A DNA stretch of 64,000 nucleotides from Fonticula alba ATCC 38817 (taxonomy: Eukaryota > Protista > Nucleariida). Both the position numbers and the translations under genes were made by a program. This document shows, piece by piece, positions 53,384 through 60,246 of the stretch. Location of the stretch: assembly GCA_000388065.2 (NCBI GenBank), contig KB932201.1. The stretch is one strand, 5' to 3'. The number at the start of each line of letters is the position of its first letter. Within the stretch, counting starts at the first letter, position 1. Under the pieces are notes generated by a model. That model did no database searches. It had not been told where the DNA came from and was given only the letters and a program-made list of their open reading frames with translations.

Positions 53384-54751
53384 GGGGCCAACAAGGACGA
53401 AGGGAGAGGCGGGAAGAGGCAGCCAGATGGGAAGGGGCGCTAAGTCGATGGAGGGGCGGTGTGAAGGNNNNNNNNNNNNNNNNNNNNNNNNNNNNNNNNN
53501 NNNNNNNNNNNNNNNNNNNNNNNNNNNNNNNNNNNNNNNNNNNNNNNNNNNNNNNNNNNNNNNGGGGGGGGGGACGTGATATTGGCTAGAGCCCGAGCGG
53601 ACGGGGCGCAGGACCGGGACATGGGCAGATCTGACGGCCGATCATGCCAGTCCCCTCCGGTCCGATCGTCCCCCCCCCTCCCCATCACCACCACCCCGTT
53701 GCCGCCAGCGCCAGACACGCAATGGATGGTTCTGGGACCCCTGGGCCAGGAGGATTTGAATCAGAGAAGCGGCGGGTCCCCTGGGCGGGGGGGGGGGGGG
53801 GGTTGCGTGCCCATGAAAGAGCGGGCCTGCGTCCGCCGACACTCCGGGGCACGCCCGGCGGACGCTTGATTCTGAAGCTAAAGCACCAGGGCATCCCACG
53901 CAGAAGGCGCATTTCAGCCCGCCCAAGGGGCGACGGAGAGGCGGGGGGAAAAAAGAGAGGGCCGACAAATGGGCGAGGGGACGACAATATGGTGGCGGTG
54001 CCCAGCGTGCGGGGCGCCCTTCAAAACCGGCCACCGCAGACCACCACCCGCCGGAGGAGGCACCCCCGCCCCCCAGCAAGGGCACCTGCTCTGCCCTCTC
54101 CTGCGAGGGGACAGCCATCCGTCCGGGTGTGCGGCGAGGTGGATGCGCACCATGCAGCACACACAACGGCAATCCGCTCGGCACATGAATCGCCACCCCC
54201 CCCCCCCCTCCCACCCACACGCGGCTCACTTCGGGTTTGGACACATACACCTCCAGTCACAGTCGGGACATAAAAAAGTCCACCCCCGAGGGAGGCACTG
54301 GCTCCTGCTCAGGACTCTCCCCTGCCCTCCTCGCATGCCTCTCGCCACCGCCCCCCCCCCCACCAGTCTTAAAAAGCGCGTCGGAAGGCAAAATGTTTCA
54401 ATTCTTAAGAGGAGAAGAGAAAGGCCAGGGAAGAAGGCGCATTTCTCGTTGCAAACGAGGACAGTCACAGGAAGCCAGAGGCAAGAAAAGGAGCAAGAGA
54501 GAGCAGGCACGGGGGGGGGCGCGCGCGCGCGCACACACACACACACCGCCCCACGCCGGGCCACCTTGCATCTTTCTAGGGGGATAATGGCAACCGATGT
54601 GTGCGACTGGGCGAATGCAAAAAGCCGGCTACTGGAGGGGAGGAGAGAGGGCAGGATGCGTTAGAGGAGTGGTGGGGAAGAGATGCAGGGAGAGGGGGGA
54701 AAAGAGGGCGAGAGCGGGTTCAGAAAATGGTAAGAAGGGTATCTTCAATGA

Positions 54752-55484: not shown

Positions 55485-56650
55485 GGAACACGCCGCCTTG
55501 GAGGGGGGGGGAGCCACAACCAGGGAGAGGGAGGATGTATATGTACCTGACACGCATGGGCTTGGAGCGCGCACGGGGGGAAGGCATATGGCAGGGCATC
55601 TCGGAAAGATGGGCCCGCGGCGGACATGACAGTGAAGCCGCGCACGCGCAGAGGGACCAACACGCTCAGGCCCGAGGGACGAGAGGAAGGGAGGGCACGC
55701 CCCCTACGCCACCGCGCGGCAAAATCCCAGGACAGAGGGACGTGCGCGAGCACGCACGCACCAAGCCACGGGAAGTAGAGAGGCGTGTGCAGGTGGGTGT
55801 GGGGGGAGGGGCCCAGCCCCCGAAATGGGTCGTGGGAAGGGGAATGTGCGCGTGCTTGGGGGCTATCGCACCAGCCCGGGTCTCTTTTATAGTGGCCAGA
55901 AATGTGCCGCGGTCATTCGGCCACCCCTCCTCTCGTGCCGGGGTCGCCACGCTTGCACAGTTCACGCGGCCCTCTTTCCTCGAACGCGCGCCTTGTCACC
56001 GCCTCCCAGGCAAACAGCCCCGGGGCATGCACGGCGCGCGCCGGGTCTCTCTGAGACAACGACCTGAGCAGCCGTGCGCCGGTCCGTCGCTCCAGCGAAG
56101 GGCCCTGGACCCCTTCATTCTTGTCCGGGGGGAGAAGGGTCCCCTCCCCGAGGTGCGAGCAGGCCGGGCAGAGCTCCCTCCTCCGCCCCACCCAGCGAGA
56201 CCGCACCGGCCCAGACGCGCCCCCATCCTCCTGAGCCCGGGGGGGTGGGGGGGTGCCAGCCCTACTGCCCGCCGGATAGATGTGTATTCTAAATCCCCCT
56301 CCACACGCCGACCCCCAATCGCGGTCAGGGTCCCCGCTGTGTAGGACTCGGTGGAGGAACCCCGAACAGGTGCCACAAAAAGTGGCATGCATCATCACAT
56401 GCTGTGAGAGGTGCCCACGTATCACCTTCCTCCCGGATCCCGATCGCCCCCCCCCCCCCCAGCCCTGCCGATTCAACACACTCACACATGCTTGCACTCC
56501 GCCGACAAGATGGTGGAACGTTTGTCTGAGGGGGCACCCCTGTCGGATTTGGGCGCGAGCTGGCCCGTGCAGTGAGAGCCTCTGCCATTCTTCCCCCCCC
56601 CCCCTTCTCCCTCCCCTCCCCGGCCTGGACCTCTCGCCCTCTCGCCCACG

Positions 56651-57741
56651 ATGGCCATCCTCTCGCTCCTCATTGCCTGCGGGGCCGGCTTCTATGTTCT
56701 CGGTGCGCCGCGGTCCGGCATCTTGGTCGCCTCTTGCTGTAGAATTGGACCCCTCCCCCCCCACTGATGCCCTTGCTCGATCATGGTGTGCGCGAAAATG
56801 AACACAAAAAGGCCCCACTGGCGCCCCGCAAGCAGCCCGGGTCCTCGGCTACACGGTCGGCACGGTGGTCAATATGGTCGTGCGCGGGCGCAGCGGCTTC
56901 ACCCGCTTTGTCAATCAGGCTGGACTACAGGATGTACGTGCCCCCGCCCCTGCCCTCCCTCTGGCTTTTCCTGCCGGCCAACGCACACGGCTGACTGATG
57001 TGCTTTCAGGTTCACCGCGATTTGGAGGGCACCATCGATCAGATCCACTCCATTCGTCGGGATCTGAGCTTTCGTGGAGCCATCCAGCAGGCCGTCTTCT
57101 CTGGTGGCGCCTCGGCATCAGCCCAGCACTATGTTCCACGCGAGCGAGTTACCCCGGCACCTGGGCCCGATGGCCCGGCAGCCTCGATCCCGGCGACCGG
57201 CGGTGCTGCTCCCTTTTCTCCTCTTTCCCCGGCCTCGCAGGCCGCTCCACCCGAGCACGGGGGCCAGGCGCCCGCGACAGTGGCCAGCATCCTGACCGCG
57301 GCGGCCAGTCAGGCCTCCCGACCGGTGGTCACGCACAGCGACCCAGGGTCCCTGAGCCCGGCTTCTCACTCTGGGACCATTTCCGGCGGCCATCGTCCGA
57401 TGGCCACGCCCGGGGGTGTTTTCGCCTCGCCCAGTCGAACAGGCACGCACTGGATGGCGAGAGGGCAATGCCGGACGGGGGGAGGGGCAGTGGGGCTGGA
57501 GCTGCCAGATCCCGGGGGGGGGGCACCTTCTCCTGACCCACACATCTCGCACAAGCATACACATACACCCATGCCTTTGCTGACCCTCTTGGCTCGCGTC
57601 CCCCCCCCCCCACGTATACGTCACCGCGTCGATGGCCACAATTCTCCCATACACAACCGCACAGATGCTCTTCCCGGCGGAGCGGATATCGTGGCACAGT
57701 CCTTCGCTCGCTCGCTCCAGCGCCCACAGCGGCCATCCTGA
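56651..57741 (+). CDS. tatB: TatB-like twin-arginine translocase subunit (mitochondrial mtTatB-type), ~227 aa, 4 exons (56651-56702, 56812-56933, 57010-57442, 57665-57741)
   Basis: Spliced product MAILSLLIACGAGFYVL-GP-TGAPQAARVLGYTVGTVVNMVVRGRSGFTRFVNQAGLQD|VHRDLEGTIDQIHSIRRDLSF..., disordered Pro/Ala/Ser linker, C-terminal GGADIVAQSFARSL. It has an N-terminal TM helix, an LGP hinge and an amphipathic helix. Exon lengths 52+122+433+77 = 684 nt keep frame. Confidence 0.75.
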
Positions 57742-57825
57742 GGCCGTGCCTGGTCATCCCACTGGACGCGGCACCCTTTCTTTCTGCCCAATCGAACGCA
57801 AAAACGACCCCTGTGTCCTCGTTGA

Positions 57826-57867
<42 letters not shown>

Positions 57868-60246
57868 TCCTCCTCCCCTCCTTTCGCCTGCGTCCCTCTC
57901 TCTGCTTGGGGAAGGGCAGTCGCCTGTGCTCGGGATCTGACCCGGCCGATCCGAGGCCGGCGCTGCGTCGGCGGTCACGGGTGTTTCTCGTGATTGGCCC
58001 CGTTGGAGCGTTGGCACTCATATATGCGCCCCATTTCTCTCGGGCGCCCTGCCCCTTGCAGGTAGCACATACCAAGGGTTGCCGCTGCTTGTGTAGCAGC
58101 CCCTTCCTGTTTCTCACTCAGCCCCTTCCCTTGCGGGAGGGGAACGCGGGGGCGCAGGGCACAATACGTTGCGCCCGGCGTCGCCGCGGTACACGCGTCC
58201 AGGGTGTGCCGGATGCGGCAATGCCCGGGTGCAGGGCGGGGGGGGGGGGGGGGGCGAGGTACCCGGACCTCGCGCCGATGACGAATGTCGCCGGCGGCAC
58301 ACGCTCGCCTGGGGGCCGCGCGTGTTGGCATTTTGAATGTGGCTGGGGGGGGGGGGGGGGGGCAGAGAGCCGAGACGAGTCAATTTGCGGTCCCCCCCCC
58401 TCTGCCATGGGGAGAGTGGGTAGGGGGATGATTATTGGCCCGCCGGGGCGCCCACGCCCGGGTGTCCCCCCCCCTCCCCGGGCATGGGGATGCCTCACAG
58501 GAGGAGAACGAGCTTGGCCCGACGCGCAGCGAGCAAAAGGCCCGGCAAAAATGGGGAATAATAATGTTGAGAATATGGCCAAAATCGGGTGCGTTCGCCG
58601 CGGGTCGCCGCCGCCCCACACGCCGGGGCGTTACACAAAGCGGGCAGGGAAGGGGATCCTGCGTCGCACCCCAGTTCCCGGATGGGGGAGCACCCTGCTT
58701 TTGTCCCCCGCCCGCAGATTGATTGCCAGGGCACNNNNNNNNNNNNNNNNNNNNNNNNNNNNNNNNNNNNNNNNNNNNNNNNNNNNNNNNNNNNNNNNNN
58801 NNNNNNNNNNNNNNNNNNNNNNNNNNNNNNNNNNNNNNNNNNNNNNNNNNNNNNNNNNNNNNNNNNNNNNNNNNNNNNNNNNNNNNNNNNNNNNNNNNNN
58901 NNNNNNNNNNNNNNNNNNNNNNNNNNNNNNNNNNNNNNNNNNNNNNNNNNNNNNNNNNNNNNNNNNNNNNNNNNNNNNNNNNNNNNNNNNNNNNNNNNNC
59001 CCCAATGCCTCTCTTTCGTGCATATCCACCTGCCTGGGGGAGGGGGTGTTGCGCGGCATTTTCCCCGACCCGGGCGCATCTCTCATCTGAGGCCGGCTGT
59101 CCACTCGTTGGCGAGGCGCCCGCGCAAATCATTCCCCCCCCGGCTCCCCGTCCTTGCAGACGGGCGGATCAAGGGAACCGGGGGCGGGGGGAGGCCCAGA
59201 CCGCGATGGTTGAGGGGTGGCCTCATGGCCCATTCCAGGGGATTTCCCCGACCGCGGCCACACGCACACACATGCATCTGCGCAAAGGCGCGCCCGGGTC
59301 CCCGTGCGGATGGTTATGGTACATGTATGATGTGCGTGTGTGCATGTGTGCGTGTGTGCGTGCGTGTGTGCGTGTGTGCGTGTGTGTAAATGCGCACGTG
59401 TCGGGGGCCCTACACCGGGCGGCCGACAGTTCCCCTTGTCGGTGCACTCCCTGCGGCCCCTTTGGCTTTTGACGCTCAGCCACGGACCCATGGTGCGCTC
59501 ACTCGCATCTGGGGGCATTCCCCCGGCCCACTGTTGGATGCCCTCGTCTGACAACTCGGGGCATTTCGTCGGAAGGCCTTGTCTCGGCCCTGGTTCGGGA
59601 CCCCGGCCCCCGTTCCTTGGGGCCGGGGCGCGAGGCCGGGGCGCGGGGCGCAGGGCACGGGGGGCACCCACCGTCTTGCCTTGGCGTGCCGCGAGCCCGC
59701 GCCCGATTGCAGCGCACGGGGCGCGGGGTGGCGGCGGGCCGGCTGGCGCCCCATGCATCGGATGCGCCTTCTGGCCGGGTCGGGCCGGCCGACCGCAAGA
59801 ACGGCCCGCCGGACATCGCAAAGGCGGTGCTTGGGATGTGTATCCGGGACGGCCAGGAGTTCTCGGCGTCGGGCCGGCACCCCTTCCTCGGGGGTAGGGC
59901 GCGGGGGGATGTCGGGCGCCCCCCCCCCCCCGCCCCCGGACATGGCCGGATGTGCGCGCGGTTTGTGCCCCCGGCCTCTAAGGCACGCCACCGGCAGGGG
60001 ATGGGCGATGTGCAGACGGATGCGTGCGCGCGCACTCTCACACACGCGTGTGCGGGCCAGGGGCGAGAGAAAGCGGCCGAGAGAGAGGGCCAGGAGTTGC
60101 ACATGCCCTGGGGCCCCGTACTCGGGCCACCATGGGTTGTGCTTCTCCCGGCCCCGCCGGCGATGTGGCCTCAGCCATGTTCCCGCAACGCCTCTCGGAT
60201 GAGTGGCGCGCGCGCCTCCACCCGCGAGCCCCTTGACATTCCGACT

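Follow-up and report, generated by a model that had tools for sequence, protein, structure and literature searches.

Positions 56651-57741 of a 64-kb stretch of Fonticula alba DNA (hereafter the window, meaning the whole of the sequence analysed) hold a nuclear, intron-containing and expressed gene whose product very probably is a homologue of TatB, judging by profile comparison and protein architecture. TatB is part of the machinery for twin-arginine translocation (Tat) of folded proteins, and the gene lies on nuclear scaffold KB932201.1 (4.77 Mb) of assembly GCA_000388065.2. The feature is split over several open reading frames (ORFs), none of which covers the whole according to the ORF list of the window, and a preliminary description had proposed that four exons are spliced here into a mitochondrial-type TatB. 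Joining these exons (Table 1) gives 684 nt, that is, 227 codons followed by TGA. Both the four-exon structure and the 227-aa product were reproduced by spliced RNA contigs, and it is practically certain that the gene and its product are real. All of the sequence blocks quoted in the preliminary description are found in the product, namely a hydrophobic N-terminus, VLGP, an amphipathic stretch, VHRDLEGTIDQIHSIRRDLS, a long linker and GGADIVAQSF.

The RNA evidence consists of Logan contigs from 4 public runs, representing two samples of one 2012 study, aligned to positions 56400-58000. Each run contributed one spliced contig matching the proposed exon structure (4 of 4 runs), at an assembler word depth of about 40-50. 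The junction 56702/56812, for which RNA mapping had been suggested as a check, was present in all four runs; since it completes the codon of Gly18 and thereby creates the Gly-Pro hinge, the hinge exists only in the RNA-supported splicing. The third joint, at which 222 nt are skipped, was recovered in three of the four runs, the contig of the remaining run stopping before intron 3. In the alignments this joint is printed as 57438/57661 with 4 letters of slack, and only a shift of +4 (57443-57664) gives splice-like ends, in this case GC..AG. Because exons 3 and 4 share one frame and intron 3 contains no in-frame stop, it is the RNA alone that supports this last intron. At the 5' end, the frame is closed by a stop 27 codons upstream of the ATG, and no other start codon occurs in between, so the protein opens directly with its hydrophobic helix.

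The N-terminal part of the protein has the layout typical of the TatA/B/E family. A short transmembrane helix (in the range of about 15-17 residues) is predicted from hydropathy at the very start; it spans 16 residues (residues 2-17) and has a Kyte-Doolittle value of 2.0 over residues 1-15. Directly after it comes the hinge residue G18 and then an amphipathic helix (residues 19-50) with a hydrophobic moment of 1.3-1.6. The second helix is followed by a long, low-complexity linker rich in Pro, Ala, Ser and Gly, which is probably disordered and extends to residue 202. At the level of single residues, the counterparts of G18-P19 and P23 are G21-P22 and P26 in the TatB of E. coli and of alphaproteobacteria, in an ungapped register in which the Fonticula protein starts three residues later than bacterial TatB. 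Further positions aligned with TatB are L6-L7, A25, R27, G30, V33-G34 and M38, followed by R44-S-G-F47, V51, A54 and L56, and over 56 columns about 32% of the residues are identical to those of the best TatBs. The features in common with alphaproteobacterial TatB (PF02416; NCBIfam TatB) are the short N-terminal membrane helix, the Gly-Pro hinge, the second Pro four residues on, an amphipathic helix in which R..G..VG....R-S-G-F is in register, and after it a second helix and a tail rich in Pro and Ala.

There are also clear differences from the alphaproteobacterial proteins. The Fonticula gene is nuclear and carries three introns, and it is not adjoined by tatA or tatC, as TatC and TatA profiles found no match in the six frames of the window. 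The hinge reads GPTGAP in Fonticula, whereas it reads GPKDLP in alphaproteobacterial TatB. Moreover, the first 57 residues include four Arg and neither Asp nor Glu, the first acidic residue being residue 58; by contrast, in each of the 69 bacterial TatBs assembled for comparison, the 40 positions behind the hinge include 4-8 acidic residues, and at least one precedes it. This acid-free N-terminus may be an adaptation to mitochondrial import. The complete 227-aa product contains 16 Arg and 0 Lys, and the absence of lysine fits the strong GC bias of the genome.

These bacterial sequences, and the profiles made from them, were obtained through the hinge motif. The hinge VIGPKDLP was first confirmed in the TatB of an Azospirillum chromid, one of a few diverse TatBs found by tblastn against plasmids, and a metagenome collection was then scanned with the hinge peptide as a degenerate DNA pattern, which returned 120 loci. 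From these we extracted 69 TatB-type proteins of at least 95 aa, 40 short SAR11-like proteins and 32 neighbouring TatA proteins; the profiles were custom-built from these extracted sequences, with the TatB profile comprising the 69 alphaproteobacterial-type proteins. The Fonticula hinge, VLGPTGAP, has only G, P and P in common with the motif used for selection, and the sample is therefore not biased towards the Fonticula protein. The short proteins, about 40 in number and 66-80 aa in length, have the form MPQIGWFEIL...GPKDFP and combine a TatB-type Gly-Pro hinge with a TatA-like length; they probably come from SAR11-like marine bacteria.

Against the N-terminal TatB profile of 75 positions, the spliced protein scored 16.8 bits (E 2.7e-7 at Z=1, that is, for one target), and the alignment is a single ungapped block that pairs profile positions 18-71 with residues 15-68. 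The full-length TatB profile gave 24.8 bits (E 1.5e-9), part of which comes from the low-complexity tail, and for this reason we prefer the N-terminal score. None of 40,000 shuffled sequences (20,000 shuffled over the whole protein and 20,000 within segments) exceeded 9.1 bits. Of the 1,280 further ORFs in these metagenome loci, those scoring more than about 6 bits were all TatB fragments or genuine TatA (6-15 bits). The window's own 290 ORFs all remained below 2 bits, and when the window was scanned in six frames (1,083 pieces), unspliced exon 2 was the top match of the TatB profile. Comparison by hhalign assigned the TatB match a probability of 89% (P 2.3e-6) over residues 11-68. The TatA profile, on the other hand, scored the spliced protein at -1.8 bits, with an hhalign probability of 0.2%. 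A phmmer search with residues 1-90 against 1,671 sequences gave, among the 25 best matches listed, the window's own ORFs and then TatB only (23), with a best pairwise TatB score of 28.7 bits. A profile of enterobacterial TatB reached only 2.9 bits, in an alignment that keeps the register of the membrane helix and the hinge, and is too narrow a profile; E. coli TatB used as bait in the protein index and the genome collection retrieved Enterobacteriaceae only.

A second line of evidence comes from the ESM Atlas feature search, which is alignment-free and independent of the profiles. When queried with the whole deposited protein of this gene (H696_00413), 98 of the 100 nearest clusters carry PF02416, and the best matches score 0.92 with 189-192 shared features. 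The top three clusters are eukaryotic (green algae and plants), and one of them is named putative TatB. Residues 1-85 alone also had TatA_B_E clusters as 98 of their 100 nearest neighbours, in this case bacterial and with scores of 0.85-0.86. Exon 3 alone gave no Tat signal in the same search, so it is the helix-hinge-helix part, together with the overall architecture, that carries the signal. The assignment to the TatA/B family, and within it to the TatB type, thus holds on the strength of a significant in-register TatB-profile match, the lack of a TatA match and the TatA/B language-model neighbours, whereas the second motif quoted in the preliminary description, which lies in exon 3, carries no recognisable Tat signal on its own. 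With exon 3 or residues 1-85 of the deposited model as queries, word-index searches returned H696_00413 alone.

The deposited model helps to explain how such a gene could be overlooked. H696_00413 is annotated as a "hypothetical protein" of 210 aa with no Pfam domain, and departs from the RNA-supported structure at two introns, using another acceptor for intron 1 and other boundaries for intron 3. As a result it is missing GPTGAPQA, which contains the hinge, and GVFASPSRT near the C-terminus. It scores 7.0 bits with the N-terminal TatB profile and 16.6 bits with the full-length profile, some 8-10 bits lower than the RNA-supported protein because of the wrong acceptor. The expectation that gene callers would mishandle this gene was thus borne out, with the 210-aa model deleting the hinge and losing about 10 bits. 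The ESM Atlas structure model of the deposited protein has a pLDDT of 0.52. In a previous survey, Petru et al. (2018) searched 60 eukaryotic proteomes, including that of Fonticula alba, with Tat profiles and reported no TatB there (PMC6251230). A single wrong splice acceptor removed the hinge and hid the gene from this published HMM survey.

Among eukaryotic proteins, the natural comparison is with plant mitochondrial TatB (Arabidopsis At5g43680; Carrie et al. 2016; PMC6251230), which is likewise encoded by a nuclear gene and, compared by description, has the same overall architecture and nearly the same length (227 aa in Fonticula, 232 aa in Arabidopsis; PMC13456617). Plant and green-algal TatB-like clusters are also the nearest language-model clusters of the whole Fonticula protein. 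By analogy, the two proteins would be expected to share the job of inserting the Rieske Fe-S protein in concert with TatC. Nuclear mitochondrial TatB has been reported only in plants, ochrophytes, oomycetes and Guillardia, a cryptophyte (PMC6251230), whereas the slime-mould-like Fonticula belongs to an opisthokont lineage, the Holomycota, in which none has been reported. The Fonticula protein is thus from a lineage where nuclear TatB was thought to be absent, and our literature search pairing Fonticula with tatC or twin-arginine found no paper. Plant mitochondrial TatB has been described as entirely different in sequence from TatB (bioRxiv 10.1101/2020.04.06.026997); unlike the plant protein as portrayed there, the Fonticula protein retains a readable bacterial TatB sequence.

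Table 1. Exons, introns and transcribed flanks of the Fonticula alba TatB candidate gene (positions in the window).
Feature	Positions	Strand	Remarks
5' untranslated region	56583..56650	+	RNA contigs start at 56583-56636, i.e. 15-68 nt upstream of the ATG
Exon 1, coding	56651..56702	+	Met1 to first base of the Gly18 codon; entire hydrophobic helix (residues 2-17), no presequence ahead of it
Genomic span of residues 15-68 (introns 1 and 2 inside)	56693..57039	+	Ungapped alignment to TatB profile positions 18-71
Intron 1, 109 nt, GT..AG	56703..56811	+	Splits the Gly18 codon of the hinge; joint in 4 of 4 runs
Exon 2	56812..56933	+	Remaining bases of the Gly18 codon, then Pro19 and a basic amphipathic helix (19 to about 50), to Asp58
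Intron 2, 76 nt, GT..AG	56934..57009	+	Joint in 4 of 4 runs
Exon 3	57010..57442	+	Second helical stretch VHRDLEGTIDQIHSIRRDL (residues 59-77), then linker to residue 202
Intron 3, 222 nt, GC..AG	57443..57664	+	Joint in three runs; no in-frame stop
Exon 4, coding	57665..57741	+	C-terminal 25 residues including GGADIVAQSF; TGA stop at 57739-57741
3' untranslated region	57742..57811	+	RNA contigs end at 57776-57811

The genomic setting is that of a nuclear gene. The window is GC-rich (about 60-70% GC) eukaryotic DNA, and the neighbouring genes are ordinary eukaryotic ones that include a MINDY deubiquitinase and an FHA-domain protein. Within the transcript, the length of intron 3 is a multiple of three, such that its retention would give an in-frame isoform of 301 aa; this intron also contains a G10 tract and a C12 tract. 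Another C12 tract lies in the 5' untranslated region (56593-56604), and the contig of one run is one C shorter there, which may reflect length variation or an assembly or sequencing slip. A (TG)16 microsatellite is located at 57829-57860, about 20 nt past the ends of the transcript contigs. C and G homopolymer tracts of 14-18 nt flank the gene (56447-56460, 58238-58254 and 58345-58362) and are seemingly typical of intergenic DNA here. The 64 kb contain 13 assembly gaps with a total of 2,856 N (for example 53468-53563 and 58735-58999), one of which lies 1 kb downstream of the gene and makes the neighbouring gene models there unreliable.

Taken together, we favour the reading, to which we assign a probability of roughly 60%, that this expressed nuclear gene encodes a mitochondrial inner-membrane TatB that works with TatC in a functional Tat pathway. 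Since the match is to TatB of the alphaproteobacterial type, the 227-aa protein would presumably be of alphaproteobacterial and hence mitochondrial descent. Bcs1 is imported through a membrane helix that has a basic, presequence-like helix behind it, and in the Fonticula protein the membrane helix and the basic, acid-free helix may similarly act as an internal signal for mitochondrial import and sorting. The N-terminus would then be placed in the intermembrane space, with the helices and the tail at the inner membrane's matrix face, a topology equivalent to that of bacterial TatB. The protein could pair with TatC and receive the folded Fe-S domain of the Rieske protein, which would be passed across the inner membrane, driven by the membrane potential, as plant mitochondrial TatBC does. 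Bcs1 of fungi and animals likewise moves the folded Rieske domain across the inner membrane, but it is an unrelated protein with an unrelated mechanism and is driven by ATP, whereas the Tat receptor is driven by the membrane potential.

A number of observations weigh against a functional mitochondrial TatB. In opisthokonts, Rieske translocation is normally performed by Bcs1, an AAA-ATPase. The profile was custom-made from one motif-selected sample, and when, to allow for the choice of this gene from an entire genome, the N-terminal match is corrected for a proteome of about 6,000 proteins, which we take to be the size of that of Fonticula, its E becomes about 2e-3. Pfam gave no TatA_B_E match in exon 2, in exon 3 or in the hinge-less 210-aa deposited model. 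When the deposited model was run exhaustively by phmmer against 1.84 billion proteins, the only matches were the protein itself and one of low complexity, so that no orthologue from another eukaryote backs the TatB assignment. This blank is itself uninformative, because a score of about 29 bits is insignificant at that library size (28.7 bits extrapolates to an E of about 0.1 among 1.84 billion sequences) and because the query was without the hinge. At the residue level, Ser5 stands where the conserved membrane-helix glutamate belongs (Glu8 of E. coli TatB), a residue that eukaryotic TatB is reported to keep (PMC6251230), and the MFDIG..E signature of the TatB N-terminus is absent. As for the partner, one review of opisthokont mitochondrial genomes reports tatC only for the choanoflagellate Monosiga and for one sponge family, the oscarellids, and the mitochondrial genome of the nucleariid Nuclearia simplex is not reported to carry it.

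In the main rival explanation, the protein is a TatB-derived relic: TatC would have been lost, Bcs1 would move the Rieske protein, and the former TatB would either have been repurposed in the inner membrane, for instance as a helper of complex III assembly, or be drifting towards loss. The loss of the membrane-helix Glu and of the MFDIG start, the failure of the deposited-model phmmer search to detect an orthologue elsewhere, and the mitochondrial DNAs of Nuclearia simplex and of the reviewed opisthokonts, from which tatC is unreported except in Monosiga and Oscarellidae, all speak for such a relic. However, the frame is intact over four exons and the spliced RNA is present at a word depth of about 40-50, and the best conserved part of the protein is the hinge and amphipathic helix that contact TatC in bacteria. 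In addition, every eukaryote known to have a nuclear TatB also has a mitochondrial tatC (PMC6251230). We therefore regard a relic as unlikely, while ranking it above the two explanations that follow.

That the protein is an unrelated small single-pass membrane protein which resembles TatB by chance is improbable. The family is tiny and simple in architecture, the scores are modest (17-25 bits), the curated libraries were blank on the pieces tested, and the gene was chosen from a whole genome for its resemblance to TatB, all of which would favour a look-alike; on the other hand, the alignment runs ungapped over 54-58 residues with the hinge in register, no composition-preserving shuffle comes near its score (0 of 40,000, the within-segment ones included), the match is specific to TatB over TatA, and a second, alignment-free method concurs. 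Slightly less probable still is horizontal transfer, in which TatB would have been acquired from prey or associated alphaproteobacteria, with introns gained later, and not from the mitochondrial endosymbiont. Fonticula eats bacteria, and the closest sequences among those compared are free-living alphaproteobacterial-type TatBs. The description of plant mitochondrial TatB as entirely different from TatB (bioRxiv 10.1101/2020.04.06.026997) can be read in the same direction. Yet the best bacterial TatB is only about 32% identical, and the three spliceosomal introns, a GC content like the host's, a eukaryote-style tail and helices that are acid-free and targeting-like argue for a long residence of the gene in its host. 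The whole-protein language-model neighbours, moreover, are eukaryotic TatB-like clusters, and a protein of this length is too short to be placed by a tree. A mitochondrial TatB working with TatC remains our preferred reading.

The wider proposal, that Fonticula alba keeps a working mitochondrial Tat pathway, the first in Holomycota, is one we make only tentatively. In opisthokonts, Bcs1 is considered to have taken the place of mitochondrial Tat, and the range of this pathway would be widened by a TatB from the lineage that is sister to fungi, which would also make it possible to test whether Tat and Bcs1 coexist or replace each other. In the literature, where nuclear mitochondrial TatB came from has been called unresolved, and even its common ancestry with bacterial TatB has been questioned; because its match to alphaproteobacterial TatB is still readable, the Fonticula protein can serve as a bridge sequence. 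If the proposed mitochondrial descent is correct, it would link the contested "TatB-like" nuclear genes of eukaryotes with the mitochondrial endosymbiont, and would imply that tatB moved to the nucleus before opisthokonts split from other eukaryotes.

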